A stretch of DNA of 64,000 nucleotides from Phaeosaccion multiseriatum (lineage: Eukaryota; Protista; Ochrophyta, other classes), in contig OZ218965.1 in NCBI GenBank assembly GCA_965112735.1, positions 1,178,001-1,242,000 of the forward strand, read 5' to 3'. Within the stretch, counting starts at the first letter, position 1; every line of letters begins with the position of its first letter. This document shows, in pieces, positions 1 through 63,921 of this stretch. The notes below the pieces were generated by a model. That model had not been told where the DNA came from. It saw only the letters and a list, made by a program, of their open reading frames with translations, and made no database searches. The translations under genes and the position numbers were made by a program.

Positions 1-916
1 TCCCTGCCCCTTTCCCCGCCTCTGCCTGCCCCCTCTTGCCCCCACCCCACAGCCCGTCGCCCAGACCGACCCAGCCCCCTTTGGCTGCTCCACTCGAGCA
101 AGACGGTGGTGCTTCAGGGATGATGCAAGCACGGGGTACACACGTCAGATGGGGGCAGCGCGGGCGGGGCCGCTGAGCGAAGCCGCAGAGGAGATGAAGA
201 AGGACGGGAGGGGGAAGGAGGAGGCGGAGAGGAAGAGGAATGAGGTCCAGGATGAGACTGAGGCGGAGGGGGGACAGAAGGGGAAGGCAGTCTGTTTGAT
301 AGGGGTGTAATTTTTGCAAAGTGGAGTTGAGGTGTTCCTTCTACTGTGAGTGTGAATGGTGGTGCTGCCCCACTATTGCTATTGCATGCGCTCCTCCAGA
401 GCATTTGGAGTGGAGCAGGGCAGAGCATTGCGGCCCTGGCTTAGGGGAAGGCGCCCACCCGCCCGTGCAGCAGCGATGCAAGCGGAATGGGCCAGGACTG
501 GTGGGGGCATGCGTGATCAGGGTTCAGGCAATGAAGAGCTCACACAATAGACTTCCTGCTTGGCGCTCTCCGCGGGGGGTTGAATAAGGGCAGCAGTAGA
601 AGATGAGAAAGGGGGAGGGCGTTTCAAATATGTCATTGGAGAGGGGTGCGTGGCACTGCCGTTTCGCGGCGAGAGGCGTGTGAGGCTCTTCTCAGAGTTT
701 CGGAGAAAGGAAGCCGGTGCTAGGCCCAAAGTCGACATATCTATCTATACATGCGTTATGCTATGGTACGCACTGATTCGGCTGGAAGAAGAAGCACACT
801 TCTCACAAAGACATCCCAAAGAGAGAGGGGCTGAAGTGAAGCCCCTTTCTATGGCACCGTGTGCGAAACAGAACGATGCTTGACGCAGGAGGGGCCACGC
901 TGTCTGTCCTGGTCAC

Positions 917-2008
917 TCAGTCCTCGCAGTCGCAGGGGTGACCATTGGCGTGCACCCACTGCTTCATCTCCTCAAGGGCGGCAGAGGCAATATCCCATCT
1001 AAGATCGCCATATTCGTTTTTCACGACTTGTGGGCATGCCCTCCTATCCCAGGGACACATGACCTCCTCCGAGCGGAGCCACTTCAGGACAGAGAGGCTC
1101 TCACCGCCATAAACTGCTGCAGTAGTGACATATTCATCCCACGTGCACAGCTCCCGTGCGTTTGCATGCAGCCACTGCAGCACTTCCAGATTGCCTTGCT
1201 CGGCCGCCCAGAAAGCCCCCCACCTCCACCCGCTGTAGTTACCTGCCGCCTCCATCTTAGCTCTGACCTTGGGATGGTGCACAAGCATGTCCAACACGCT
1301 GAAATGCCCCGCCTGCACAGCCCCCTCCAACATATCAAATTGGGGAGGGCCCCCAAACTCGTCGGACAGCAGCCACGTAAGAACCTCCACATGGCCGCAC
1401 TTGCCAGCTTCGCGACAAGTAAGGCTCTGATCCCACGGGCACCGCTCCTTGTTGGGCAGGTCCTCCGCTCGCAGCCATTGGAGGATGCTCAGTGCGTGCT
1501 TTTCATTCCTCACCGCAACCATGCATATGGTCAAACCCCAGGTACACCCCATGCTGTGAAGAGCCTTGCAAATACGCAAGTCTCCGTACTGTGCCGCAGC
1601 CTCAAAAGTGTTCACACTCAGCTCATACCCGTACTTCCTGGCCCACCTCAAACGCTCCTCAGACTCAACCACACTCCTGATCCGGGTTGTCTTGGCCCAA
1701 TGAAGACGTCTGTAGTGCTCCTTCCACTCCTTGCTCACCGCCGCTACGAACAAGTCGTGCCCACCACCAGTCCACTCCATCACGCTACGGAGCATTACAG
1801 CCTGGGCCAGAGCCTCTTCACAAGCTTCGAAGGTCTGAGCATCGCTTCCCTCGCCTCCAGCAAGGGCAGCGGGACCGGGAGTAGGTGTTGAAGCGGCACC
1901 GGCACCACCGCTTCCATGCAAAGTCAGACATACTTCCCCTGCCGAGGAGTCGGTGGGTGGAGCTGGCTGGAGCCTTTTGCCGCCATGCTTTCGGCTCGGT
2001 CCGTCCAT
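917..2008 (-). CDS. Array gene A1: F-box-like N-terminal motif + ankyrin-type (CPW) repeats, 363 aa
   Basis: Uninterrupted ORF MDGPSRK...HPCDCED. F-box-like LRSVMEWTGGGHDLFVAAVSKEWKEHY. Repeats of the form AAxxGxLEVLxWL...CPWD. Confidence 0.9.
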   Translation of the reverse strand: MDGPSRKHGGKRLQPAPPTDSSAGEVCLTLHGSGGAGAASTPTPGPAALAGGEGSDAQTFEACEEALAQAVMLRSVMEWTGGGHDLFVAAVSKEWKEHYRRLHWAKTTRIRSVVESEERLRWARKYGYELSVNTFEAAAQYGDLRICKALHSMGCTWGLTICMVAVRNEKHALSILQWLRAEDLPNKERCPWDQSLTCREAGKCGHVEVLTWLLSDEFGGPPQFDMLEGAVQAGHFSVLDMLVHHPKVRAKMEAAGNYSGWRWGAFWAAEQGNLEVLQWLHANARELCTWDEYVTTAAVYGGESLSVLKWLRSEEVMCPWDRRACPQVVKNEYGDLRWDIASAALEEMKQWVHANGHPCDCED

Positions 2009-2611
2009 GTCTTCCGCGGTCCCACTCTAGATGACTGCTTGACACTTATGATGCGCGGTGCAGGGCAGGTGATGGGGGGGAAGAAGCCCTTTAGCTTTCC
2101 TCAGCGAAGCCTGGCATGACGAGAGAAGGGAAGGGGCAGGAGGAACGACAGGACGGAAATGACACGCGGTGTGAGGAAAAGGCGGCATCGGTACCTCCCC
2201 TGCTGTTGGGCCTTTGCCGACACCCCCCCCTGCCGAGACCCCCCCCCCGAAGAGCCGAAGAGTGTGGAGGGCAAGTTTACTTCAATGGAGTCGATCACCA
2301 TCTCCCCGCACGGCCTCGACTGCTCTAAGCCTCCTCCAGCCTGCACTCTTCAGCGCCACACTCCTACCTGCAGCTTGGTGGAAAATGGTGCGTGGAGAGT
2401 GAGTTGAGAGGGATACAAGGCAAGTTGGTCGTTCAGCGTCGGCCTGGTAGTCGAGCTCTGTGGTCGCCACACCACCCGAAGAGACGGAGCGAGCGCGGGG
2501 CCGGCGCAAACAAGGCCGCCATTGCTGCATGATGGCACAGAGAAGGTGGGGCCATTAGTCACTTCTTTGAAGCGCTGCAGATACTTTGGCGAAGTGGGCA
2601 ACACACACGCC
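2009..2611. promoter_or_regulatory. Putative bidirectional promoter/5'UTR region between A and B start codons (repeated in every unit)
   Basis: ~600 bp between divergent ATGs, conserved in all four units. Contains a candidate minus-strand GT..AG intron at 2111-2194 with a pyrimidine-rich acceptor. Confidence 0.55.
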
Positions 2612-3634
2612 ATGGCAGAGGCAGAGGATACCTCCAAGAGGCAGCGCCTGGGCACGGAGGAGGGTGTGACAAGTTATACCGCGGAGACTGCCGAGGGCGA
2701 AGGTGCTGTGCAGGAGACGTACGTGGCCAGTGCCAAGGCCCTGGGAATGGAGGAGGTCCTGCAGAAAATCATGCCGCTTGTGGGGAAGGGCCGCCACGTC
2801 TTCACCGCCACCGTATGTAGGGAATGGAAAGAGCACTACAGCATGGCCCACCCTTCAGCCGAGACTTCCCTTCCAAGCGTGGTGGAGTCTGTCAGGTGCT
2901 TGCAGTGGGCCAAGGAGAAATGTGGGTACGAGCTGAGTGTGGGCACTTTCCGAGCGGCGGCAGAGTACGGAGATGTGAGCGTGTGCGAGGAGCTGCTTCA
3001 CCGCATGCACTGCCCCTGGGCTACAATGGCCTGTAGGGCGGCTGTGAGGAATGCTAGGCATGGACTGCGTATTCTCAAGTGGCTGCGATCCGAGGACCTC
3101 CCCAACAAGGAGCAAGGTCCTTGGTCACAGGATTGGGTCGGGGACGAAGCTGGCTGGTGCGGCAATGTGGAGGTTCTTACGTGGCTGCTGTCCGACGAGT
3201 TTGAGGGCCCTCCTCAATGCATTATGTGGGTGGGGGCTGTGCGGGCGGGGCGCATTCGCGTGTTGGACATGCTTGTGCACCATCCGAAGGTCAGAGCTGA
3301 GATGGAGGCGGCAGGGGACCTCAGCGGGTGGAGGAATGGGGCTAAATGGGCGGCCGAGGAAGGCAATCTGGAAGTGCTGCAGTGGCTGCATGCAAACGCA
3401 CGGGAGCTGTGCAGGTAGGATGAATATGTCTGTTATGAAGCAGTTTATAGCGGTAAGAGCCTCTCTGTCCTGAAATGGCTCCGCTCGGAGGAGGTCATGT
3501 GTCCCTGGAACGAGTCGGCCTGCCCACAGTACTTTGAAGGAGTGATTCATGGATGGGATATGCCCCCTGCCGCCTTTGAGGAGATGAAGCAGTGGGTGCA
3601 CGACAATGGTAACCCCTGCGACCTCGGGGACTGA
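2612..3634 (+). pseudogene. Array gene B1, ankyrin-type repeat protein with premature stop
   Basis: Colinear with B2 (both 1023 nt), but the conserved TGG (RW DE) is TAG at 3416-3418. The downstream frame is intact to TGA at 3632-3634. Confidence 0.85.
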
Positions 3635-4756
3635 CTGGCAGGAAGCGTTTCGAGACGGAGGCAGGACGGGTAGGAAGGGAGGCGGCCCTGAGAAGGCGGC
3701 GACAGCCTCTTCGAATAGGGGGGGCAACAAGTCGAGGTGAGCGGGGCGGATGGGAGTGCTCTCTGGCTTGGCGGTGCTTTTGAGGTTACCGAATGCCTGT
3801 CTGCAGCTCCTCCTGCTGCTATCTGTTCTCTGATCCTCTTCCCTGCCCCTTTCCCCGCCTCTGCCTGCCCCCTCTTGCCCCCACCCCACAGCCCGTCGCC
3901 CAGACCGACCCAGCCCCCTTTGGCTGCTCCACTCGAGCAAGACGGTGGTGCTTCAGGGATGATGCAAGCACGGGGTACACACGTCAGATGGGGGCAGCGC
4001 GGGCGGGGCAGCTGAGCGAAGCCGCTGAGGAGATGAAGAAGGACAGGAGGGGGAAGGAGGAGGCGGAGAGGAAGAGGAATGAGGTCCAGGGTAAGACTGG
4101 GGTGGAGGGGGGACAGAAGAGGAAGGCAGTCTGTATGATAGGGGTGTTATTTTTGCAAAGTGGAGTTGAGGTGTTCCTTCTACTGTGAGTGTGAGTGGTG
4201 GTGCTGCCCCACTATTGCTATTGCATGCGCTCCTCCAGAGCGTTTGGGAGTGGAACAGGGCAGAGCATTGCGGCCCTGGCTTTGGGGAAGGCGCCCACCC
4301 GCCCGTGCAGAGCAGCGATGCAAGCGGAATGGGCCAGGCCTTGTGAGGGCATGCGTGATTAGGGTTAAGGCAATGAAGAGCTCACACCATAGACTTCCTG
4401 CTTGGCGCTCTCCGCGGGGGGTTGAGGAAAGCAACGCAGTAAGGAAGGGGAGGAGGAGGAGGAGGAGAGGGCGATCCAAAGCCATTGGCTGATATCAGTG
4501 CAAGTACTGCCGTTACGCGGCGAGAGGCGTGTGAGGCTCTTCTCAGCGTTTCGGAGAAAGGAAGCCGGTGCTAGACCCAAAGTCGACATATCTATCTATA
4601 CATTCGTTATGCTACGGTATGCACTGATTCGGCTGGGAGAAGAAGCACACTTCTCACAAAGAGAGACGGGCTGAAGTGAAGCCCCTTTCTATGGCACCGT
4701 GTGCGAAACAAGACGGTGCTTGACGCAGGAGGGGCCACGCCGTCTGCCGCGGTCAC

Positions 4757-5845
4757 TCAGTCCTCGCACTCGCAGGGGTGACCATTGGCGTGCACCCACT
4801 GCTTCATCTCCTCAAAGGCGGCAGGGGGCATATCCCAGTAATCATCTAATCCGTCTTGAAGGTACTGTGGGCATGCCGACTCGTCCCAGGGACACATGAC
4901 CTCCTCCGAGCGGAGCCACTTCAGGACAGAGAGGCTCCCACCCCTACAAACTGCTTCACAAGAGACATATTCATCCCACCTGCACAGCTCCCGTGCGTTT
5001 GCATGGAGCCACTGCAGCACTTCCAGATTGCCTTCCTCGGCCGCCCATTTAGCCCCATTCCTCCACCCGCTGAGGTCCCCTGCCGCCTCCATCTCAACTC
5101 TGACCTTGGGATGGTGCACAAGCATGTCCAACACGCGAATGCGCCCCGCCTGCACAGCCCCCTCCCACATATAATATTGAGGAGGGCCCTCAAACTCGTC
5201 GGACAGCAGCCACGTAAGAACCTCCACATGGCCGCACTTGCCAGCTTCGCCACAAATGAAGTGCTGGGCCCACGGGCACTGCTCCTTGTTGGGCAGGTCC
5301 TCCGCTCGCAGCCATTGGAGGATGCTCAGTGCATGCCTTTCATTCCTCACCGCAACTATGCATACGGTCAAACCCCAGGCACACCCCATGCTGTGAAGAG
5401 CCTTGCAAATACGCAAGTCTCCGTACTGTGCCGCAGCCTCAAAAGTCTTCACACTCAGCTCATACCCGTACTTCCTGGCCCACCTCAAACACTCCTCAGA
5501 CTCAACCACACTCCTGATCCGGGTTGTCTTGGCCGGATGAAGACGTCTGTAGTGCTCCTTCCACTCCTTGCTCACCGCCGCTACGAACAAGTGGTGGCCC
5601 CCACCAGTCCACTCCATCACGCTACTGAGCATTACAGCCTGGGCCAGAGCCTCTTCACAAGCTTCGAAGGTCTGAGTATCGCTTCCCTCGCCTCCAGCAA
5701 GGGCAGCGGGACCGGGAGAAGCCGCCACAGCGGCACCGGCACCACCGCCTCCATGCAAAGTCAGACATACTTCCCCTGCCGAGGAGTCGGTGGGTGGAGC
5801 TGGCTGGAGCGTTTTGCCGCCATGCTTTCGGCTCGGTCCGTCCAT
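4757..5845 (-). CDS. Array gene A2: F-box-like + ankyrin-type repeats, 362 aa
   Basis: ATG (CAT 5843-5845) MDGPSRK; paralogous to A1; intact ORF. Confidence 0.9.
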   Translation of the reverse strand: MDGPSRKHGGKTLQPAPPTDSSAGEVCLTLHGGGGAGAAVAASPGPAALAGGEGSDTQTFEACEEALAQAVMLSSVMEWTGGGHHLFVAAVSKEWKEHYRRLHPAKTTRIRSVVESEECLRWARKYGYELSVKTFEAAAQYGDLRICKALHSMGCAWGLTVCIVAVRNERHALSILQWLRAEDLPNKEQCPWAQHFICGEAGKCGHVEVLTWLLSDEFEGPPQYYMWEGAVQAGRIRVLDMLVHHPKVRVEMEAAGDLSGWRNGAKWAAEEGNLEVLQWLHANARELCRWDEYVSCEAVCRGGSLSVLKWLRSEEVMCPWDESACPQYLQDGLDDYWDMPPAAFEEMKQWVHANGHPCECED

Positions 5846-6442
5846 GTCTTCTGCGGTCCCACTCTGGATGACTGCTTGGCACTTATGATGTGTCGCGCTG
5901 GGCAGGTGATGGGGGGGAAGAAGCCCTTTAGCTTTCCTCAGCGAAGCCTGGTACGACGAGAGAAGGGAAGGGGGAGGGGGAAAGACAGGACGGAAATGAC
6001 ACGCAGTGTGAGGAAAAGGCGGCATCGATAACCCCCCTGCTGTTGGGCCTTTGCCGAGACCCCCCCCCGGAAGAGCCGAAGCGTGTGGAGGGCAAGTTTA
6101 CTTCGATGGAGTCGATCACCATCTCCCCGCACGGTCTCGACTGCTCCAAGCCTCCTCCAGCCTGCACTCTTCAGCGCCACACTCCTACCTGCTGCTTGGT
6201 CGAAGAGGAACGGAGGTGGTGCGTGGAGAGTGAGTTGAGAGGGATACAAGGCAAGTTGGTCGTTCAGCGTCGGCCTGGTAGTCGAGCTCTGTGGTCGCCA
6301 CACCACCCGAAGAGACGGAGCGAGCGCGGGGCCGGCGCAAACAAGGCCGCCATTGCTGCATGATGGCACAGAGAAGGTGGGGCCATTAGTCACTTCTTTG
6401 AAGCGCTGCAGATACTCTGGCGAAGTGGGCAACACACACGCC

Positions 6443-7465
6443 ATGGCAGAGGCAGAGGATGCCTCCAAGAGGCAGCGCCTGGGCACGGAGGAAGGTGTGA
6501 CAAGTTATACCGCGGAGACTGCCGAGGGCGAAGGTGCTGTGCAGGAGACGTACGTGGCCAGTGCCAAGGCCCTGGGAATGGAGGAGGTCCTGCAGAAAAT
6601 CATGCCCCTTGTGGGGAAGGGCCGCCACGTCTTCACCGCCACGGTATGTAGGGAATGGAAAGAGCACTACAGCGTGGCCCACCCTTCAGCCGAGACTTCC
6701 CTTCCAAGCGTGGTGGAGTCTGTCAGGTGCTTGCAGTGGGCCAAGGAGAAATGTGGGTACGAGCTGAGTGTGGGCACTTTCAGAGCGGCGGCAGAGTACG
6801 GAGATGTGAGCGTGTGCGAGGAGCTGCTTCACCGCATGCACTGCCCCTGGGATACAACGGTCTGTAGGGTGGCTGTGAGGAATGCTAGGCATGGACTGCG
6901 TATTCTCAAGTGGCTGCGATCCGAGGACCTCCCCAACAAGGAGCAAGGTCCTTGGTCACAGGATGACGTCGGGGACGAAGCTGGCGAGTGCGGCAATGTC
7001 GAGGTTCTTACGTGGCTGCTGTCCGACGAGTTTGAGGGCCCTCTTGAATTCATTTTGTGGGAGGACGCTGTAAAGGCGGGGCGCATTCTCGCGTTGGACA
7101 TGCTTGTGCACCATCCCAAGGTCAGAGCTGAGATGGAGGCGGCTGAGGGGGACAGCGAGTGGTGGGACGGGGCTATATGGGCGGCCGCGGAAGGCAATCT
7201 GGAAGTGCTGCAGTGGCTGCATGCAAACGCACGGGAGCTGTGCAGGTGGGATGAAGGTGTCTCTAGTGCAGCAGTTTATGGCGGTATGAGCCTCTCTGTC
7301 CTGAAATGGCTCCGCTCGGAGGAGGTCATGTGTCCCTGGAACGAGTCGGCCTGCCCACAGTACTTTGAAGGAGTGATTCATGGATGGGATATGCCCCCTG
7401 CCGCCTTTGAGGAGATGAAGCAGTGGGTGCACGACAATGGTAACCCCTGCGACCTCGGGGACTGA
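6443..7465 (+). CDS. Array gene B2: F-box-like + ankyrin-type repeats, 340 aa
   Basis: ATG MAEAEDASKRQR. F-box-like MEEVLQKIMPLVGKGRHVFTATVCREWKEHY. AAxxGNLEVLQWL and CPW repeats. Confidence 0.9.
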   Translation: MAEAEDASKRQRLGTEEGVTSYTAETAEGEGAVQETYVASAKALGMEEVLQKIMPLVGKGRHVFTATVCREWKEHYSVAHPSAETSLPSVVESVRCLQWAKEKCGYELSVGTFRAAAEYGDVSVCEELLHRMHCPWDTTVCRVAVRNARHGLRILKWLRSEDLPNKEQGPWSQDDVGDEAGECGNVEVLTWLLSDEFEGPLEFILWEDAVKAGRILALDMLVHHPKVRAEMEAAEGDSEWWDGAIWAAAEGNLEVLQWLHANARELCRWDEGVSSAAVYGGMSLSVLKWLRSEEVMCPWNESACPQYFEGVIHGWDMPPAAFEEMKQWVHDNGNPCDLGD

Positions 7466-8581
7466 CTGGCAGGAAGCGTTTCGAGACGGAGGCAGGACGG
7501 GTAGGAAGGGAGGCGGCCCTGAGAAGGCGGCGACAGCCTCTTCGAATAGGGGGGGCAACAAGTCGAGGTGAGCGGGGCAGATGGGAGTGCTCTCTGGCTT
7601 GGCGGTGCTTTTGAGGTTACCGAATGCCCATCTGTTGCTTGTTCTGGTGCTACCTGTTCTCTGATCCTCTTCACTGCCCCCTTCCCCGCCTCTGCCTGCC
7701 CCCTCTTTCCCCCACCCCACAGCCCGTCACCCAGACCGACCCAGCCCCCTTTGGCTGCTCCACTCGAGCAAGACGGTGGTGCTTCAGGGATGATGCAAGC
7801 ACGGGGTACACACGTCAGATGGGGGCAGCGCGGGCGGGGCAGCTGAGCGAAGCCGCTGAGGAGATGAAGAAGGACAGGAGGGGGAAGGAGGAGGCGGAGA
7901 GGAAGAGGAATGAGGTCCTGGATAAGAATGAGGCGGAGGGGGGACAGAAGGGGAAGGCTGTCTGTATGATAGGGGTGTTGTTTTTGCAAAGTGGAGTTGA
8001 GGTGTTCCTTCTACTGTGAGTGTGAATGTTGGTGCTGCCCCACTATTGCTATTGCATGCGCTCCTCCAGAGCGTTTGGGAGTGGAGCAGGGCAGAGCGTT
8101 GCGGCCCTGGCTTAGGGGAAGGCGCCCACCCACCCGTGCAGAGCAGCGAGGCAAGCGGAATGGGCCAGGCCTTGTGGGGGCATGCGTGATTAGGGTTAAG
8201 GCAATGAAGAGCTCACACAATAGACTTCCTGCTTGGCGCTCTCCGCGGGGGGTTGAGGAAAGCAACGCAGTAAGGAAGGGGAGGAGGAGGAGAGGGCGAT
8301 CCAAAGCCATTGGCTGACATCAGTGCAAGTACTGCCGTTACGCGGCGAGAGGCGTGTGAGGCTCTTCTCAGCGTTTCGGAGAAAGGAAGCCGGTGCTAGG
8401 CCCAAAGTCGACATATCTATCTATACATGCGTTATGCTATGGTACGCACTGATTCGGCTGGAAGAAGAAGCACACTTCTTACAAAGAGAGACGGGCTGAA
8501 GTGAAGCCCCTTTCTATGGCACCGTGTGCGAAACAAGACGGTGCTTTACCCAGGAGGGGCCGCGATGTCTGCCCTGGTCAC

Positions 8582-9673
8582 TCAGTCCTCGCACTCGCAG
8601 GGGTGACCATTGGCGTGCACCCACTGCTTCATCTCCTCAAAGGCGGCAGGGGGCATATCCCATACTCTTGCGCCATGTGCGTTTTTCACGACTTGTGGGC
8701 ATGCGCACTCGTCCCAGGGACACATGACCTCCTCCGAGCGGAGCCACTTCAGGACAGAGAGGCTCCCACCCCTACAAACTGCTTCACAAGAGACATATTC
8801 ATCCCACCTGCACAGCTCCCGTGCGTTTGCATGGAGCCACTGCAGCACTTCCAGATTGCCTTCCTCGGCCGCCCAGACAGCCCCATTCCTCCACCCGCTG
8901 TAGTTACCTGCCGCCTCCATCTCAGCTCTGACCTTCGGATGGTGCACAAGCATGTCCAACACGCGAATGCGGCCCGCTCGCACAGCCCCCACCCACATAC
9001 AGGCTTCAGGAGGGCCCTCAAACTCGTCGGACAGCAGCCACGTAAGAACCTCCACATGGCCGCACTTGCCAGCTTTGCCACAAATCAGGGTATGATCCCA
9101 CGGGGACCGCTCCTTGTTGGGCAGGTCCTCCGCTCGCAGCCATTGGAGGATGCTCAGTGCGTGCCTTTCATTCCTCACCGCAGCTATGCATACGGCCCAA
9201 CCCCAGGCACACCCCATGCTGTGAAGAGCCTTGCAAATACGCAAGTCTCCGTACTGTGCCGCAGCCTCAAAAGTCTTCACACTCAGCTCATACCCGTACT
9301 TCCTGGCCCACCTCAAACGCTCCTCAGACTCAACTACACTCCTGATCCGGGTTGTCTTGGCCGGATGAAGACGTCTGTAGTGCTCCTCCCACTCCTTGCT
9401 CACCGCCGCTACGAACAAGTCGTGGCCACCACCAGTCCACTCCATCACGCTACTGAGCAAGACAGCCTGGGCCAGAGCCTCTTCACAAGCTTCGAAGGTC
9501 TGAGTATCGCTTCCCTCGCCTCCAGCAAGGGCAGCGGGACCGGGAGAAGCCGCCACAGCGGCACCGGCACCACCGCCTCCATGCAAAGTCAGACATACTT
9601 CCCCTGCCGAGGAGTCGGTGGGTGGAGCTGGCTGGAGCCTTTTGCCGCCATGCTTTCGGCTCGGTCCGTCCAT
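8582..9673 (-). CDS. Array gene A3: F-box-like + ankyrin-type repeats, 363 aa
   Basis: Intact ORF paralogous to A1/A2. Confidence 0.9.
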   Translation of the reverse strand: MDGPSRKHGGKRLQPAPPTDSSAGEVCLTLHGGGGAGAAVAASPGPAALAGGEGSDTQTFEACEEALAQAVLLSSVMEWTGGGHDLFVAAVSKEWEEHYRRLHPAKTTRIRSVVESEERLRWARKYGYELSVKTFEAAAQYGDLRICKALHSMGCAWGWAVCIAAVRNERHALSILQWLRAEDLPNKERSPWDHTLICGKAGKCGHVEVLTWLLSDEFEGPPEACMWVGAVRAGRIRVLDMLVHHPKVRAEMEAAGNYSGWRNGAVWAAEEGNLEVLQWLHANARELCRWDEYVSCEAVCRGGSLSVLKWLRSEEVMCPWDECACPQVVKNAHGARVWDMPPAAFEEMKQWVHANGHPCECED

Positions 9674-10265
9674 GTCTTCCGCGGTCCCACTCTAGATGAC
9701 TGCTTGACACTTATGATGTGCGGTGAGGGGCAGGTGATGGGGGGGAAGAAGCCCTTTAGCTTTCCTCAGCGAAGCCTGGTACGACGAGAGAAAGGAAGGG
9801 GGAGGGGGATTGACAGGAGGAAATGACACGCAGTGTGAGGAAAAGGCGGCATCGGTACCTCCCCTGCTGTTGGGCCTTTGCCGAGACTCCCCCCCCGAAG
9901 AGCCGAAGAGTGTGGAGGGCAAGTTTACTTCGATGGAGTCGATCACCATCTCCCCGCACGGCCTCGACTGCTCTAAGCCTCCTCCAGCCTGCACTCTTCA
10001 GTGCCACACTCCTACCTGCTGCTTGGTCGAAGAGGAACGGAGGTGGTGCGTGGAGAGTGAGTTGAGAGGGATACAAGGCAAGTTGGTCGTTCAGCGTCGG
10101 CCTGGTAGTCGAGCTCTGTAGTCGCCACACGACCCGAAGAGACGGAGCGCGGGGCCGGCGCAAACAAGGCCGCCATTGCTGCATGATGGCACAGAGAAGG
10201 TGGGGCCATTAGTCATTTCTTTGAAGCGCTGCAGATACTCTGGCGAAGTGGGCAACACACACGCC

Positions 10266-11291
10266 ATGGCAGAGGCAGAGGATGCCTCCAAGAGTCAGCG
10301 CCTGGGCACGGAGGAGGGTGTGACAAGTTATACCGCGGAGACTGCCGAGGGCGAAGGTGCTGTGCAGGAGACGTACGTGGCCAGTGCCAAGGCCCTGGGA
10401 ATGGAGGAGGTCCTGCAGAAAATCATGCCGCTTGTGGGGAAGGGCCGCCACGTCTTCACCGCCACCGTATGTAGGGAATGGAAAGAGCACTACAGCATGG
10501 CCCACCCTTCAGCCGAGACTTCCCTTCCAAGCGTGGTGGAGTCTGTCAGGTGCTTGCAGTGGGCCAAGGAGAAATGTGGGTACGAGCTGAGTGTGGGCAC
10601 TTCCAGAGCGGCGGCAGAGTACGGAGATGTGAGCGTGTGCGAGGAGCTGCTTCACCGCTTGCACTGCCCCTGGGATACAATGGCCTGTAGGGCGGCTGTG
10701 AGGAATACTAGGCATGGACTGCGTATTCTCAAGTGGCTGCGATCCGAGGACCTCCCCAACAAGGAGCAAGGTCCTTGGTCACAGTATAACGTCGGGGACG
10801 AAGCTGGCTGGTGCGGCAATGTGGAGGTTCTTACGTGGCTGCTGTCCGACGAGTTTGAGGGCCCTCCTCAATGCATTATGTGGGTGGGGGCTGTGCGGGC
10901 GGGGCGCATTCGCGCGTTGGACATGCTTGTGCACCATCCGAAGTTCAGAGCAGAGATGGAGGCGGCAGGGGACCTCAGCGGGTGGAGGAATGGGGCTATA
11001 TGGGCGGCCGAGCACGGCAATCTGGAAGTGCTGCAGTGGCTGCATGCAAACGCACGGGAGCTGTGCAGGTGGGATGAAGATGTCTGTTATGAAGCAGTTT
11101 TACGCGGGAAGAGCCTCCCTGTCCTGAAATGGCTCCGCTCGGAGGAGGTCATGTGTCCCTGGGACGAGTCGGCATGCCCACAGTTCCATGAAGACGAAGA
11201 TGGTGATGACTGGGTTATGCCCCCTGCCGCCTTTGAGGAGATGAAGCAGTGGGTGCACGACAATGGTCACCCCTGCGAGTGCGAGGACTGA
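10266..11291 (+). CDS. Array gene B3: F-box-like + ankyrin-type repeats, 341 aa
   Basis: Intact ORF from MAEAED; ends with the A-type tail HPCECED. Confidence 0.9.
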   Translation: MAEAEDASKSQRLGTEEGVTSYTAETAEGEGAVQETYVASAKALGMEEVLQKIMPLVGKGRHVFTATVCREWKEHYSMAHPSAETSLPSVVESVRCLQWAKEKCGYELSVGTSRAAAEYGDVSVCEELLHRLHCPWDTMACRAAVRNTRHGLRILKWLRSEDLPNKEQGPWSQYNVGDEAGWCGNVEVLTWLLSDEFEGPPQCIMWVGAVRAGRIRALDMLVHHPKFRAEMEAAGDLSGWRNGAIWAAEHGNLEVLQWLHANARELCRWDEDVCYEAVLRGKSLPVLKWLRSEEVMCPWDESACPQFHEDEDGDDWVMPPAAFEEMKQWVHDNGHPCECED

Positions 11292-12393
11292 CTGGCAGGA
11301 AGCGTTTCGAGACGGAGGCAGGACGGGTAGGAAGGGAGGCGGCCCTGAGAAGGCGGCGACAACCTCTTCGAATAGGGGGGGCAACAAGTCGAGGTGAGCG
11401 GGGCGGATGGGAGTGCTCTCTGGCTTGGCGGTGCTTTTGAGGTTACCGAATGCCCATCTGCTGCTTCTCCTGCTGCTGTCTGTTCTCTGATCCTCTTCAC
11501 TGCCCCTTTCCCCGCCTCTGCCTGCCCCCTCTTGCCCCGACCCCACAGCCCGTCACCCAGACCGACCCAGCCCCCTTTGGCTGCTCCACTCGAGCAAGAC
11601 GGTGGTGCTTCAGGGATGATGCAAGCACGGGGTACACACGTCAGATGGGGGCAGCGCGGGCGGGACAGCTGAGCGCAGCCGCAGAGGAGATGAAGAAGGA
11701 CAGGAGGGGGAAGGAGGAGGCGGAGAGGAAGAGGAATGAGGTCCAGGATAAGACTGAGGCGGAGGGGGGACAGAAGGGGAAGGCTGTCTGTACGATAGGG
11801 TTGTTGTTTTTGCAAAGTGGAGTTGGGGGTGGGTGAATGGTGGTGGTGCCCCACTATTGCTATTGCATGCGCTCCTCCAGAGCGTTTGGGAGTGGAGCAG
11901 AGCAGAGCATTGCGGCCCTGGCTTTGGGGAAGGCGCCCACCCGCCCGTGCAGAGCAGCGAGGCAAGCGGAATGGGCCAGGCCTTGTGGGGGCAGGCGTGA
12001 TTAGGGTTAAGGCAATGAAGAGCTCACACAATAGACTTCCTGCTTGGCTCTCTCCGCGGGGGGGTTGAGGAAAGCAACGCAGTAAGGGAGGGGAGGAGGA
12101 GGAGAGGGCGATCCAAAGCCATTGGCTGATATCAGTGCAAGTACTGCCGTTACGCGGCGAGAGGCGTGTGAGGCTCTTCTCAGCGTTTCGGAGAAAGGAA
12201 GCCGGTGCTAGGCCCAAAGTCGACATATCTATCTATACATTCGTTATGCTATGGTACGCACTGATTCGGCTGGAAGAAAAAGCACACTTCTCACAAAGAG
12301 AGACGGGCTGAAGTGAAGCCCCTTTCTATGGCACCGTGTGCGAAACAAGACGATGCTTGACACAGGAGGGGCCGCGCTGTCTGCCCTGGTCAC

Positions 12394-13482
12394 TCAGTCC
12401 TCGCACTCGCAGGGGTGACCATTGGCGTGCACCCACTGCTTCATCTCCTCAAAGGCGGCAGGGGGCATATCCCATCCACCACCGCTTCTTTCTTTAATGT
12501 CCTGCGGGCATGCCGACTTGTCCCAGGGACACATGACCTCCTCCGAGCGGAGCCACTTCAGGACAGAGAGGCTCTTACCGCCATAAACTGCTTCAGCACA
12601 GAGATATTCATCCCACCTGCACAGCTCGCGTGCGTTTGCATGCAGCCACTGAAGCACTTCCAGATTGCCTTCCTGGGCCGCCCAGCTAGCCCCCCACGTC
12701 CACCCGCCTTGTCCCTCAGCAGCCTCCATCTCAGCTCTGACCTTGGGATGGTGCACAAGCATGTCCAACGCTCGAATATGCCCCGCCAGCACAGCCTCCG
12801 TCCATATATCAAATTGAGGAGGGCCCTCAAACTCGTCGGACAGCAGCCACGTAAGAACCTCCACATGGCCGCACTTGCCAGCTTCGAGACAAATTAAGTG
12901 CTGATCCCACGGGCACCGCTCCTCGTTGGGCAGGTCCTCCGCTCGCAGCCATTGGAGGATGCTCAGTGCGTGCCTTTCATTCCGCACCGCCACCATGGAT
13001 ACGGCCCAACCCCAGGCACACCCCATGCTGTGAAGAGCCTTGCAAATAAGCAAGTCTCCGTACTGTGCCGCAGCCTCAAAAGTCTTCACACTCAGCTCAT
13101 ACCCGTACTTCCTGGCCCACCTCAAACGCTCCTCAGACTCAAACATACTCCTGATCCGGGTTGTCTTGGCCGGATGAAGACGTCTGTAGTGCTCCTCCCA
13201 CTCCTTGCTCACCGCCGCTACGAACAAGTCGTGGCCCCCACCAGTCCACTCCATCACGCTACTGAGCATTACAGACTGGGCCAGAGCCTCTTCACAAGCT
13301 TCGAAGGTCTGAGCATCGCTTCCCTCGCCTCCAGCAAGTGCAGCGGGACCGGGAGTAGGTGTTAAAGCGGCACCGGCACCACCGCTTCCATGCAAAGTCA
13401 GACATACTTCCCCTGCCGAGGAGTCGGTGGGTGGAGCTGGCTGGAGCCTTTTGCCGCCATGCTTTCGGCTCGGTCCGTCCAT
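12394..13482 (-). CDS. Array gene A4: F-box-like + ankyrin-type repeats, 362 aa
   Basis: Intact ORF paralogous to A1-A3. Confidence 0.9.
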   Translation of the reverse strand: MDGPSRKHGGKRLQPAPPTDSSAGEVCLTLHGSGGAGAALTPTPGPAALAGGEGSDAQTFEACEEALAQSVMLSSVMEWTGGGHDLFVAAVSKEWEEHYRRLHPAKTTRIRSMFESEERLRWARKYGYELSVKTFEAAAQYGDLLICKALHSMGCAWGWAVSMVAVRNERHALSILQWLRAEDLPNEERCPWDQHLICLEAGKCGHVEVLTWLLSDEFEGPPQFDIWTEAVLAGHIRALDMLVHHPKVRAEMEAAEGQGGWTWGASWAAQEGNLEVLQWLHANARELCRWDEYLCAEAVYGGKSLSVLKWLRSEEVMCPWDKSACPQDIKERSGGGWDMPPAAFEEMKQWVHANGHPCECED

Positions 13483-14072
13483 GTCTTCCGCGGTCCCACT
13501 CTAGATGACTGCTTGACACTTATGATGCGCGGTGCAGGGCAGGTGATGGGGGGGAAGAAGCCCTTTGGCTTTCCTCAGCGAAGCCTGGTACGACGAGAGA
13601 AAGGAAGGGGGAGGGGGATTGACAGGAGGAAATGACACGCAGTGTGAGGAAAAGGCGGCATCGGTACCTCCCCTGCTGTTGGGCCTTTGCCGAGACCCCC
13701 CCCCGAAGAGCCGAAGAGTGTGGAGGGCAAGTTGACTTCGATGGACTCGATCACCATCTCCCAGCACGGCCTCGACTGCTCTAAGCCTCCTCCAGCCTGC
13801 ACTCTTCAGTGCCACACTCCTACCTGCAGCTTGGTGGAAAATGGTGCGTGGAGAGTGAGTTGAGAGGGATACAAGGCAAGTTGGTCGTTCAGCGTCGGCC
13901 TGGTAGTGGACATCTGTAGTCGCCACACGACCCGAAGAGACGGAGCGAGTCGAGGCAGCGGGGCCGGCGCAAACAAGGCCGCCATTGCTGCATGATGGCA
14001 CAGAGAAGGTGGGGCTATTAGTCACTTCTTTGAAGCGCTGCAGATACTCTGGCGAAGTGGGCAACACACGCC

Positions 14073-15101
14073 ATGGCAGAGGCAGAGGATGCCTCCAAGA
14101 GGCAGCGCCTGGGCACGGAGGAAGGTGTGACAAGTTATACCGCGGAGACTGCCGAGGAAGAAGGTGCTGTGCAGGAGACGTACGTGGCCAGTGCCAAGGC
14201 CCTGGGAATGGAGGAGGTCCTGCAGAAAATCATGCCCCTTGTGGGGAAGGGCCGCCACGTCTTCACCGCCACGGTATGTAGGGAATGGAAAGAGCACTAC
14301 AGCATGGCCCACCCTTCAGCCGAGACTTCCCTTCCAAGCGTGGTGGAGTCTGTCAGGTGCTTGCAGTGGGCCAAGGAGAAATGTGGGTACGAGCTGAGTG
14401 TGGGCACTTCCAGAGCGGCGGCAGAGTACGGAGATGTGAGCGTGTGCGAGGAGCTGCTTCACCGCTTGCACTGCCCCTGGGATACAATGGCCTGTAGGGC
14501 GGCTGTGAGGAATACTAGGCATGGACTGCGTATTCTCAAGTGGCTGCGATCCGAGGACCTCCCCAACAAGGAGCAAGGTCCTTGGTCACAGTGTAACGTC
14601 GGGGACGAAGCTGGCAAGTGCGGCAATGTGGAGGTTCTTACGTGGCTGCTGTCCGACGAGTTTGAGGGCCCTCCTCAACATATTATGTGGTCGGGGGCTG
14701 TAGACGGGGGGCGCATTCGCGCGTTGGACATGCTTGTGCACCATCCCAAGGTCAGAGCTGAGATGGAGGCGGCAGGTAACTCCAGCGGGTGGAGGGATGG
14801 GGCTTTCTGGGCGGCCGCGAAAGGCAATCTGGAAGTGCTGCAGTGGCTGCATGCAAACGCACGGGAGCTGTGCAGGTGGGATGAAGATGTCTGTTTTGAA
14901 GCAGTTTTCCACGGGAGGAGCCTCTCTGTCCTGAAGTGGCTCCGCTCGGAGGAGGTCATGTGTCCCTGGGACGAGTGGGCATGCCCGCAGTACATTAAAG
15001 ACAGAGGCGATGGTGGATGGGATATGCACCCTGCCGCTTTTGAGAAGATGAAGCAGTGGGTGCACGCCAATGGTCAACACCCTTGCGACTGCGAGGACTG
15101 A
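14073..15101 (+). CDS. Array gene B4: F-box-like + ankyrin-type repeats, 342 aa
   Basis: Intact ORF from MAEAED; last gene of the array. Confidence 0.9.
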   Translation: MAEAEDASKRQRLGTEEGVTSYTAETAEEEGAVQETYVASAKALGMEEVLQKIMPLVGKGRHVFTATVCREWKEHYSMAHPSAETSLPSVVESVRCLQWAKEKCGYELSVGTSRAAAEYGDVSVCEELLHRLHCPWDTMACRAAVRNTRHGLRILKWLRSEDLPNKEQGPWSQCNVGDEAGKCGNVEVLTWLLSDEFEGPPQHIMWSGAVDGGRIRALDMLVHHPKVRAEMEAAGNSSGWRDGAFWAAAKGNLEVLQWLHANARELCRWDEDVCFEAVFHGRSLSVLKWLRSEEVMCPWDEWACPQYIKDRGDGGWDMHPAAFEKMKQWVHANGQHPCDCED

Positions 15102-15196
15102 CTGGCAGGAAGCGTTTCGAGATGGAGGCAGGACGGGTAGGAAGGGAGGCGGCCCTGAGAAGGCCGAGGTCGTCGAGTCCTTGGAACAAAGTTTAT

Positions 15197-15675
15197 CGGC
15201 CCCATGCACGCCTAGCGGCCTAGGCCTATTTGGGAAAATTGCCCGGCCTAGCGAGGGCCGTAGGCTCTCGGCCTATTTTTATGCCGCCGCCTAGGCGGCC
15301 TAAGCGGGGCGGAGGCCCGCGCGGCCTAGGGCAGACGCCAGCCAACTAGGCGGACGGTGGGAGTGCCCAGAGTGCAAAGAGTAGTCAGTTTCATTGCATG
15401 GGATTGGAGGTGAGGAGTAGACTTCGTTCGTGTTGTCTCTTCCGCCTCGCTGGCCCTACGAGGAGTGCATACCTCCAGGTGTTGCTGCTACCCACTGGCT
15501 GGGCGGCACCACGCACGCGCCCACGGTCACTGGGAGGCTGCCTAGAGGCGGGCTATGTAGGCCGCCTAGGACTGAAAAGTGAGCGGGCTAGAGCGGGCGG
15601 AGGCCGCCGGCCTAGGCCTAGATCGGCCGAAGGCCGAGCGGCCTAGAGCAAAACCGCTAGGCGTGCATGGGGCCG
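15197..15675. mobile_element. Non-autonomous TIR element (MITE), hAT-like
   Basis: Perfect 22-bp TIRs CGGCCCCATGCACGCCTAGCGG (15197-15218 / 15654-15675). Flanking 8-bp near-duplication AAGTTTAT (15189-15196) / AAGTTTAG (15676-15683). Many subterminal GCCTAG/CTAGGC motifs; no transposase ORF. Confidence 0.85.
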
Positions 15676-16274: not shown

Positions 16275-16670
16275 TCAACCGTCAAGGAAAGGACCGGCGT
16301 TGAGCTCCTCCGGCACGCTCAGGTCCCACGGGTTGGCGAAGCTCGGACCGTCGTCCTCCGCCCACTCCACCTCCACACACTCCCACGGCATGAAGCCCGA
16401 AGCCTCATCCACCGCCTTGACACCGCACAACTGCCCTGCAAAGAGTCGCTCCGACCCCATTGTGGGGACACTGTGCACACCGCCATCTTCTTGGAAGAGC
16501 GAGGCCGAGGCGTTTCCTTCGAGCCGGAAGGGCCGCCGTACAGCCTGGGCATACAGAGCAGATCGGACCACAAAGACGGGTGCATCGCCCACCAGTCGCA
16601 TCGACACGTCCAGAGTGGTGTCTGCAAAGTAGTCGGGGGGGAGGGGGGCAGGGCCCATTGCGGCTGCGGA

Positions 16671-16706
<36 letters not shown>

Positions 16707-19002
16707 TTGTTGTTGCTGTTGCTGCTGTTGAAGGATTTGCTGCTGCTGCCGGAGGATTTGCTGCTGCTGCTGGAGAATCTGTTGCTGCTGCTGTTGCTGC
16801 TGGAGGAGCCACTGGCTCTGTGGATGCTGCGGATTCTGCTGAAGCACCAACTGCTGCTGCTGCTGCTGCTCGATCTGCCTCTGAAGCTCGTCCTGCTGTT
16901 GTTGGAGCAGCGCCTGGGCAGCCGTGCCCGGAGATGCCGGCACTGGTGCTTCTACTGCTGCTGCTGTACCACCAACTGCTGCTGCTGCTGCTCCTCCCGG
17001 CCCTTCGGCAAGACTTGCCCCCCCCCCTGGCTGGGCCGGCTTCTCAACCGCCCCTCCTTCGTCAGCCTCCCGCTTGACTCCTCCACTCCCCGCATCGGCA
17101 CCCCCCCCCCCCTTGAGTGCCTTTGTCCTCTCCTTCTCCGCCGCTGCTTTGCTCTCCGTCTCTGTCTGGGCGTACACGGGGGTGAGAAGCTTGTCAAAGA
17201 ACACCTCTCGGGCCATTCGCGCCGTTTCCGTCGTCTGAGAAGTGAGCAATGAGCGCGCACACACACACAAACGGGCATATAGATGGGCAGGCACACGGGC
17301 AGACAGAGGCATAAGGGCAGGCACACGGGGTGGGGTCGGACAGGGGGCGGAGCACGGAGAAGCGTGAAGGAGGGGTGAGTACTGCAGCGGGCGCAAACCA
17401 CTCTCTCTCTGCGCTCTCTCTACCTGTCGCAGTGTTGTCTCTTCTCTCTGCCAGTCTCTCTCTGTCACTCTCTCTGTCTCTCTCTGCCTCTCTCTGCCTC
17501 TCTCTGCCTGTCGCTGTGTTGTCTCTTCTCTCTGTTCGTCTCTCTCTCTCTGCCTCTCTCTGCCTCTCTTTGCCTCTCTTCGTCTCTCTCTATCTCTGTT
17601 GCCTCACAGCATGAGGTGAGCACAGCCACCCTCCCCCATGCCGACTCAAAAGGCTCGCTCCGCTTTACTTTGCACCACGCACACTCAATCCCTTCCCCCC
17701 TCGGGTCCGATCGGTCCGAGTGAATGGCCAAGTGCTCCCCTTGTTTCTCTCCTCTCCTTTCTTCCTTAACTTTACGTAAGGCCTTCCATACTCCTCTCCC
17801 GCTCCCCTGCCTTGTGAAAGGCCGAGCTTCTTTCCGTCTCTCTCCAGTCTTGTGCAATGCCAAGCCTCCTCTGCTGCCTTTCACTTGCTTCATCTTACCG
17901 CGTTTCCGAGAGGGTCGCTCGCCCACATATCCACGCCCTCGTCGTGCTCCCCGCCGCCTTCGGAGAGAAAAGACAAGGGAGGGAGGGAGGGAGAGAGAGA
18001 GGGAGGGAAGGAGAGAGGGATGTGGATAAGGGAGAGATAAGAGAGAGAGGGAGAGAGAGCGAGCGAGAGAAAAAAGGAGACAGGCGTCGTACAGGGTGAG
18101 AGGGACGAAAGACACATATCAAGAGAGAGGCAGGCGAGCGAGAGAGAGAAGAGGAGAAGGGGAAGAGAAGCACAGCATCCGGCGACGGGCGGGAGAAGGG
18201 GCGAAGGGACGGTTCACGCCGCTCAGAGAGACAGTCAGAGAGACACTCAGAGAGGCAGTCAGAGAGGCAGTCAGAGAGACACTCAGAGAGGCAGTCAGAG
18301 AGGCAGTCAGAGAGGCAGTCAGAGAGACACTCAGAGAGACACTCAGAGAGGCAGTCAGAGAGACGCTCAGAGAGACACTCAGAGAGGCAGTCAGAGAGAC
18401 ACTCAGAGAGGCAGTCAGAAGGACACTCAGAGAGACACTCAGAGGGACACTCAGAGAGGCAGTCAGAGAGACACTCAGAGAGGCAGTCAGAGAGGCAGTC
18501 AGAGAGACACTCAGAGAGGCAGTCAGAAGGACACTCAGAGAGACACTCAGAGAGGCGGATGTACAAATGAGTGCACGCGTGCACGAAAGGAAAGCCCCAT
18601 ACTCCTCTAAACCCAAACCGCCCCCCGGGGAGACTTGAGCCTCAGATTGAGCCCTGACACTCTACGACAGTGCCTCACCCGTTCGCACGCCGAAGGGGTT
18701 GAAGCCTTGATTCGCTTCGTGCAAGCCTGCCGCCCCTAAAGCCGCCCCCATGTGCTGCTGCCAGAGCGACTCGAGACGGTGTGCATCTGCCTGGGCGGTC
18801 TCCAGAGAGGCCGCCATGTGGGGGTCGTCAAGCATGGTGACACCCCTACGCACCACTTCCTCGGCCAGGGGGATGAGCTGGGGGAAGCGGCCGGCGCAGT
18901 ACAGAGCGCAGTTCGAGGCGATCATCTGCAGGCATATCGGCCACCAGGGGCAGGCAGGCAGGCAGGCATATGGGTAGGCCGGCAGGCAGGCAGGCAGGCA
19001 AG

Positions 19003-52246: not shown

Positions 52247-63921
<11,675 letters not shown>

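Follow-up and report, generated by a model that had tools for sequence, protein, structure and literature searches.

What kind of gene family keeps its scaffold unchanged in eight neighboring copies while five short blocks differ between most of them, and what might such proteins do for their host? The question is raised by an array of ankyrin-type genes at the left end of a 64,000-nt stretch of DNA from the ochrophyte alga Phaeosaccion multiseriatum (GCA_965112735.1, contig OZ218965.1, positions 1,178,001 to 1,242,000 of the forward strand), which is called the window here. A first-pass annotation, made from the sequence alone, had described eight genes with an invariant framework and five hypervariable blocks, and had read them as an undescribed array of immune or non-self recognition receptors whose ligand-binding surface is under strong diversifying selection. 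The explanation that we favor, and consider moderately probable, is that the locus encodes a repertoire of Skp1-cullin-F-box (SCF)-type substrate adaptors with a diversifying ankyrin groove.

The array occupies window positions 1-15400 and consists of four tandem units of ~3.83 kb each, with direct-repeat families spaced 3807-3851 nt; it probably continues past the left edge of the window. Each unit carries two intronless homologous genes arranged head to head, gene A being read from the minus strand and gene B from the plus strand. Eight homologous open reading frames (ORFs) are present as annotated, but only seven of them are intact: B1 alone is interrupted, by a TAG codon (Table 1) that is TGG in the other seven copies, with loss of a framework tryptophan. 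The finer details of the annotated pattern were reproduced throughout. All five motifs reported as invariant, LDMLVHHPK and MKQWVH among them, are identical in 8/8 copies; the amino acid strings given for blocks 2 and 5 are exact, and the block coordinates in B2 fit; and the two codon series quoted as examples of change at codon positions 1 and 2 correspond to alignment columns 229 and 226. The spacers are indeed more conserved than the blocks. Mean pairwise nucleotide identity between units is 96.0% for the head-to-head spacers, 94.2% for the tail-to-tail spacers, 95-98% for the N-terminal halves of the genes, 88.5-89.7% for the C-terminal modules, and 76-83% for the five variable blocks.

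Within the last 165 codons, the amino acid is constant at 99 and variable at 66. Nucleotide diversity at codon positions 1/2/3 is 0/0.003/0.059 in the 99 invariant codons and 0.317/0.328/0.171 in the 66 variable ones. In blocks 1 and 2 each of the eight copies is unique, and blocks 3-5 have seven haplotypes apiece. The ratio of nonsynonymous to synonymous substitution rates (dN/dS, or omega) of the whole C-terminal module, estimated by the Nei-Gojobori method, is ~1 (0.67-1.68) despite 60% of the codons being frozen. Codon site models fitted to the last 165 codons on a single tree gave an M0 omega of 1.20 and a class of omega ~11 that comprises 14.6% of codons; twice the log-likelihood difference was 145 for M2a versus M1a, 150 for M8 versus M7, and 146 for M8 versus M8a. 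Since the copies are recombinant, the site test was repeated on four segments with a separate tree for each, which gave a likelihood ratio test (LRT) statistic of 101 and omega of 11.5 for 13% of codons. As a null control, nine data sets were simulated under the fitted nearly neutral model on the four segment trees and analyzed on the single tree; the largest LRT among them was 5.5, and M0 omega ranged from 0.31 to 0.45. Recombination as an artefactual cause of the selection signal was thus rejected, and with LRTs of 101-150 against at most 5.5 under the null the pattern is far beyond chance. We concluded that the proposed diversifying selection on discrete blocks, set in a framework identical down to silent sites, is real: with recombination controlled, omega was ~11 for 13-15% of codons.

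Fifteen sites had a posterior above 0.95 in each of the two analyses (single tree and segment trees), 13 of them common to both. The selected sites of the module are alignment columns 225, 226, 229, 233, 259, 264, 267, 296, 297, 301, 302, 304, 330, 333, 334, 337, and 338. In the N-terminal part of the proteins (head and first repeats, columns 52-200) omega was 0.33, and the only selected codons, 196 and 197, both belong to block 1. The genes have been maintained: the module has undergone no fewer than 227 inferred nucleotide changes, from which 13.8 nonsense codons should have arisen in the absence of selection, against a single one observed (P = 1.5e-5). Each of the three indels comprises whole codons and is in frame.

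That the proteins are of ankyrin type, as first annotated, is borne out by Pfam and by modeling. Each of the four proteins scanned matched Ank_4 at 28-40 bits (cut-off 22.7), and Ank_2 exceeded its cut-off in A1. The full-length AlphaFold2 (AF2) model of A3 forms a solenoid with a predicted local distance difference test (pLDDT) score above 85 over residues 110-355, with paired helices at 117-311 (pLDDT 85-97). A Foldseek search of the PDB with this model returned ankyrin proteins, designed ankyrin repeat proteins (DARPins), and FEM1 ligase receptors, the ankyrin proteins and DARPins at probability 1.00; the template modeling (TM) scores of these matches are only 0.25-0.43, since the disordered N-terminus is counted in. 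The repeats depart from the canonical form in their CPW-type turns, an additional helix, and a cap formed by a hairpin.

The first-pass annotation had placed the variable sites on the surface that is randomized in DARPins. When variability was mapped on the A3 model, the first helices of the repeats were variable at 20/32 residues versus 4/37 in the second helices (Fisher p = 9e-6), the C-terminal hairpin was variable at 10/10 residues, and every one of the 15 high-posterior sites belonged to a first helix, the turn before it, or the hairpin. This part of the claim stands. The further part, a single face, comes from helical wheels: variable and invariant residues of the first helices lie 126-178 degrees apart, with per-helix permutation p values of 0.08-0.24 that are individually non-significant, and the invariant residues are small or hydrophobic, as would be expected for packing (Ala-Ala/Val, Gly, Trp). 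These observations suggest that the variable residues may lie on one face.

How is the framework kept uniform? A and B are old paralogs. Over the N-terminal 190 columns the synonymous divergence (dS) between A and B is saturated (~2.4) with omega ~0.19; the dS within each lineage is 0.025-0.04. Up to column 199 there are 14-33 fixed A/B differences in every 60 nt; the density falls to 2 per 60 nt at columns 200-239 and to zero from column 240 to the stop codon. Polymorphisms common to A and B are nearly confined to the region downstream of column ~200, with three at columns 160-199. The A/B homology ends at the stop codons, the arms of the inverted repeat finishing within 3 nt of them. In the pairwise homoplasy index (PHI) test, 0/5000 permutations reached the observed value, and at least 18 recombination events are required. 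Significant identical tracts were detected between A2 and A3 (169 nt), B1 and B2 (184 nt), and B1 and B3 (115 nt), and a 90-nt tract joins A2 and B1, which are oppositely oriented. Because of the PHI result, the shared tracts including A2-B1, and the loss of fixed A/B differences, we concluded that gene conversion among all copies, inverted ones included, homogenizes the framework and reshuffles the variable tracts. The interrupted gene B1 is itself a mosaic that shares tracts with B3, A2, and B2 and otherwise looks intact; it may still act as a donor in gene conversion.

Public sequencing data also bear on copy number. Two low-depth contigs (~11 versus ~1000 nearby) join position 6068 to 9889, which are corresponding points of adjacent units, and thereby skip exactly one unit (3820 nt); this junction hints at copy-number variants generated by unequal crossing-over in the sequenced sample. 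Over window positions 4500-10300, a single run contributed ~1,500 short contigs (77-166 nt) that match at 97% identity or more over 5.8 kb, and their summed depth over the conserved 3' ends of the genes is 3-4 times that over the spacers. The genome or the sample may hold more family copies or variants than these eight.

The ankyrin repeats are preceded by a small three-helix head that resembles an F-box. When 1.84 billion representative sequences were searched with a head profile, 61 distant relatives were found at E ≤ 1e-3; they share a motif of the type L..giL..VL.yVG.G..LF.A.VSk.W...Y; Pfam identifies six F-box, two F-box-like, and one Tub domain among them, and one relative comes from the yellow-green alga Heterococcus. 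Several distant full-length relatives share this architecture and have, at the corresponding place, an F-box that Pfam detects, and in the related ankyrin protein P0029 an F-box-like domain scores 27.3 bits (cut-off 24.3) at the position that corresponds to the head. The head model built with the new alignment has a pLDDT of 91. Among the 30 best Foldseek matches to the head in AFDB Swiss-Prot, 10 are plant F-box proteins aligned over their F-box, all at a non-significant E above 1. VIA-align, run exhaustively against 48,161 PDB chains, ranked F-box domains in all top five places (FBH1, COI1, FBXL17, Skp2, and FBXO42), with Z-scores of 3.7-4.2 and a root-mean-square deviation of 1.9-3.0 Å over 40-43 residues; about eight more F-boxes appear at lower ranks, among them FBXL2, FBXL5, Legionella AnkB (rank 16), cyclin F, Fbs2, beta-TrCP, and Fbl10. 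Such recurrent ranking of one small domain family seems hard to get by chance, and judging from the models the head probably has an F-box-type fold. The language-model atlas gave leads only (0.83-0.92).

Sequence relatives of the array proteins are distant. The best match in a collection of 5.8 billion proteins, from which the window's own proteins are absent, is 37% identical, and the relatives with a named source belong to algae of the stramenopile group (Tribonema, Ochromonadaceae, Heterococcus) and to other protists. The metagenomic contig L001 (53% G+C) encodes a distant relative with head and ankyrin repeats, P0054. A second, strongly diverged paralog, with 33-51% identity and apparently in pieces, lies ~2 kb downstream of it (the two regions concerned are L001:2721-3857 and L001:5940-6924); neighboring paralogs of the family therefore occur in other organisms too. 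In a subfamily of environmental relatives (P0025, P0031, P0037, and P0045), the F-box-like motif is split by an insertion of ~40 residues: its first half begins WRDWAGGLPDEVL, its second half reads LFVFARVCKGWRKA, and the segment between them is rich in lysine and arginine.

How would such proteins work? A pair of paralogous genes has been tandemly amplified, and each gene encodes a protein whose N-terminus is short and disordered, followed by a three-helix head like a degenerate F-box, about six ankyrin-type repeats, and a hairpin cap. Purifying selection and concerted evolution hold the head and scaffold, and positive selection drives change in the residues predicted to face the groove, which belong to the first helices of the last four repeats and to the C-terminal hairpin. 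Gene conversion, including that between inverted A and B genes, shuffles variant tracts across the eight copies, so that each copy displays a different predicted binding surface. The head may dock to Skp1 and cullin, and the variable groove may capture a target protein that is then ubiquitinated; the array would in that case be a germline-encoded repertoire of substrate adaptors. The targets would be fast-evolving themselves, with proteins of viruses, parasites, or selfish elements as the most plausible, if speculative, candidates. An arms race with such a target is the usual explanation for selection of this kind. A predicted binding face that selection keeps altering on a constant scaffold is the signature of a recognition repertoire. 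Signal peptides and transmembrane segments are absent from the proteins, and Pfam finds ankyrin families only in the full-length proteins, with no NACHT or NB-ARC domain, i.e., no nucleotide-binding oligomerization domain (NOD). Because of this and of the F-box-like head, E3-ligase substrate adaptor appears to be a more apt description than the receptor array of the first-pass annotation. A wider proposal would make the array one locus of a genome-wide, germline-encoded recognition system of an ochrophyte alga, in which hypervariable ankyrin grooves on ligase-adaptor heads bind foreign (e.g., viral or parasite) proteins directly and pass them on for degradation, so that immunity would work through E3 adaptors and not through NOD-like receptors (NLRs), and in which gene conversion between inverted paralogs renews diversity. 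We offer this wider proposal tentatively and consider it rather unlikely.

Several results weigh against the adaptor interpretation or loosen parts of it. By sequence, the window's own proteins do not qualify as members of the F-box family. Pfam has no F-box match to the N-terminal 133-136 residues at E ≤ 10; the head profile found nothing among PDB sequences, and phmmer against the PDB was also negative or weak; hhalign of the head with its F-box-bearing relatives gave E = 0.038 and a probability of 1%; and the canonical Leu-Pro of the F-box is replaced by Leu-Ala or Leu-Gly. Foldseek gave no significant match of the head to the PDB (E >1), and VIA-align Z-scores of 3-4 are in the range that the tool calls common for helical models, below its reliable level. 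The site models were run with purpose-written Goldman-Yang codon likelihood code (F3x4, all branch lengths optimized), neither PAML nor HyPhy, and variability was mapped on DSSP elements and helical wheels of the A3 model, that is, on secondary structure and not on 3D coordinates. The dS of the module framework (~0.095) is 2-3 times that of the N-terminal half. Some of the diversity could therefore be of old date or have come in from paralogs beyond the window; the value fits diverged tracts that were long retained or an import from outside copies. Finally, searches for public runs returned only runs of unknown or DNA type; those that contain the locus, compared over 4500-10300, cover genes and spacers alike with highly fragmented contigs, also contain contigs of 34-70 kb, and therefore look like DNA.

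What else could the array be? The proteins may be diversifying ankyrin binders with no role in ubiquitin ligation, which sequester, inhibit, or scaffold their partners and whose head is a cap or dimerization element that happens to resemble an F-box. The evidence for selection and for a binding face fits this explanation equally well, and the failed or weak sequence tests for an F-box in the window's own proteins and the low structural Z-scores speak for it; it is harder to reconcile with F-box domains that lead a ranking of 48,161 chains and recur down the list, with the enrichment of F-box proteins among the AFDB matches, and with the Pfam-detectable F-box or Tub domains of some head relatives. 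We regard it as possible, though on the unlikely side. A selfish or foreign origin, such as an endogenized giant-virus segment, a drive element, or a toxin-antidote system, would mean that the selection stems from a conflict with the host genome and not from host defense. Elements of this sort often carry expanded ankyrin or F-box gene families, the genes here are intronless and tandemly amplified, their distant relatives include giant-virus ankyrin proteins (e.g., a Pithovirus protein, 30% identity), and one atlas cluster is mostly Nucleocytoviricota. Against this, the G+C content of the array (0.58-0.61) equals that of the rest of the window, 2.9 million viral contigs contain no close relative, no virus-type ORF next to the array stood out in the list of ORFs up to 17 kb (Pfam was run on the array proteins only), and the nearest head relatives with a named source are from a yellow-green alga. 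Such an origin is improbable in our judgment.

Two further explanations concern the blocks themselves. A dedicated mutator, be it a diversity-generating retroelement, hypermutation of the deaminase type, or replacement of templated cassettes, would make selection on point mutations unnecessary as their cause. It might be suggested by variation sharply limited to short blocks, by many codons with two or three changes, and by entire tracts common to several copies. Changes per site are even, however (A 0.96, C 0.75, G 0.75, T 0.81), the transition/transversion ratio is 0.71 in blocks and framework alike, variation at the third position of variable codons is half that at positions 1-2, nonsense codons are far fewer than expected, and the differences are germline ones between paralogs, in which ordinary gene conversion explains the sharing of tracts. 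The even base spectrum rejects a base-specific mutator (an adenine-only retroelement or a C/G-only deaminase), and a dedicated mutator of any kind is very improbable. The last explanation, relaxed constraint, would make the genes redundant duplicates in decay and the blocks their least constrained parts. It could draw on the premature stop in B1 and on the within-lineage omega of the N-terminal half, which is near 0.6-1 and based on very few changes; but neutral decay cannot yield omega ~11, one nonsense codon is seen where 13.8 are expected, all indels are in frame, and the amino acid sequence of the framework is fully conserved. Contradicted by the site models, the null simulations, and the nonsense depletion, relaxed constraint was rejected, and we find it hardly credible.

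The features of the array are collected in Table 1. The ORF of A2 extends upstream to 6025, and homology with the other A genes begins at the ATG at 5845.

Table 1. Coordinates of the array, its genes, and their parts in the window.
Feature	Position	Strand	Details
Tandem array	1..15400		unit starts near 1, 3840, 7671, 11497; right end near 15.2-15.4 kb
Gene A1	917..2008	-	363 aa, intact; ORF, Pfam Ank_4 E = 4e-10, alignment
Gene B1	2612..3634	+	340 codons; in-frame TAG at 3416-3418; translation and codon table column 291
Gene A2	4757..5845	-	362 aa, intact
A2/B2 head-to-head spacer	5846..6442		presumed shared promoter region; present in every unit; 96% identity between units
Gene B2	6443..7465	+	340 aa, intact; coordinates of parts from 8-copy alignment
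B2 F-box-like head	~6557-6688	+	alignment-derived
B2 hypervariable module	~6956-7399	+	alignment-derived
B2/A3 tail-to-tail spacer	7466..8581		present in every unit; ~94% identity
Gene A3	8582..9673	-	363 aa, intact; protein used for modeling
A3 F-box-like head	residues 62-105 (9359-9490)	-	structural matches over model residues 10-53
A3 ankyrin repeats	residues ~110-355	-	full-length AF2 model
A3 hypervariable module	residues ~193-342 (8648-9097)	-	within the modeled protein
Gene B3	10266..11291	+	341 aa, intact; ORF and alignment
Gene A4	12394..13482	-	362 aa, intact; ORF and alignment
Gene B4	14073..15101	+	342 aa, intact; last gene of the array

Window positions 1-916 are homologous to the tail-to-tail spacer at 3840-4756, and at least one more B-type gene is therefore expected to the left; by this homology it probably ends ~200 bp before the window starts. 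In the remaining 49 kb of the window tblastn found no additional gene copy, and Rfam found no RNA family anywhere in the window. Every unit also has long ORFs (300-440 aa) on the strand opposite the ankyrin genes, e.g., 938-1891 (+), 4856-6031 (+), and 8501-9826 (+); they look like by-products of G+C-rich codon usage, not genes. Just past the array, the ORF at 16275-17468 (-) contains a very long glutamine-rich tract over a (TGC)n/CAG-type repeat at 16672-16802. The region 17400-64000 has an extreme density of micro- and minisatellites (187 Tandem Repeats Finder rows), for example 22 copies of a 46-nt unit at 25102-26142, 109 copies of a 7-nt unit at 41267-42031, and 68 copies of a 21-nt unit at 54991-56344.

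Is the array new? Within the literature searched it is undescribed for algae, as the first-pass annotation had supposed; its mode of evolution has been described in F-box families of nematodes and plants and in the ankyrin repeats of fungal NLRs. In the nematode and plant F-box families, the F-box is under purifying selection and the substrate domain under positive selection (Thomas, 2006, as cited in PMC8120010). According to the same source, nematode and plant F-box and MATH-BTB adaptors resemble the array in their tandem and inverted duplicates, with a conserved F-box end and a positively selected recognition end. A role of these families in conflict or immunity has been proposed and is mostly unproven (PMC8120010; C. 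elegans wild isolates). The array differs from these F-box families in using an ankyrin solenoid for recognition and not FTH, FBA, kelch, or leucine-rich repeats (LRRs), in a head too degenerate for Pfam, in a scaffold kept nucleotide-identical by gene conversion between inverted paralogs, and in its occurrence in an ochrophyte alga.

Fungal NLRs carry hypervariable ankyrin, tetratricopeptide (TPR), and WD repeats (Dyrka et al., 2014; PMC4986451). Their ankyrin repeats also combine a highly conserved framework with a few positively selected positions per repeat, and they likewise undergo concerted evolution and shuffling; the selected positions lie on the inner helices and the hairpin of the concave face. 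There, however, the near-identical units are repeats inside one gene, joined to NACHT or NB-ARC; in the array they are whole paralogous genes with an F-box-like partner and no NOD. Designed ankyrin libraries (DARPins; ANK-N5C) randomize the turn and first helix, which form a continuous concave binding surface (PMC4308713). The array shares with DARPins, which were among the structural matches of the model, a fixed framework and diversity in the turn and first helix; unlike them it is natural, has eight variants in the window, and is built of non-canonical repeats, and it coincides only in part with the designs in the positions that vary (about 5, 6, 9, 13, 14, and 16). Legionella AnkB (PDB 5K35) has the same order of parts, an N-terminal F-box (F-box-like here) followed by ankyrin repeats that bind substrates (as predicted here). 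AnkB is a single bacterial effector that hijacks the SCF of its host, whereas the array consists of host-encoded diversifying paralogs, and no sequence similarity between the two was detected. Other fast-diversifying repeat families of stramenopile algae are the LRR and TPR candidate immune receptors of brown algae, proposed as a recognition repertoire by Zambounis et al. (2012; PMC3341825) and in PMC11378527 (ROCO). As described there, these carry LRR or TPR on NB-ARC or ROCO and diversify by exon shuffling; the array is intronless and diversifies by point substitutions and gene conversion.

As the F-box families of nematodes and plants and the NLR repeats of fungi show, evolution of this kind is not without parallel, and the adaptor function is putative. 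The array nevertheless offers an unusually clean case in which three processes meet within 3.8 kb: purifying selection, selection for diversity, and concerted evolution between inverted paralogs, the last with a sharp boundary. It would also provide a natural set of ankyrin binders with identical frameworks, which would be useful for mapping specificity to a few positions. If our interpretation is true, an algal lineage has ligase adaptors whose grooves are diversified much as engineers diversify DARPins, with gene conversion keeping the scaffold uniform, and the array would give a tangible candidate for a system that recognizes viruses or parasites inside the cell, in organisms about whose immunity hardly anything has been learned.

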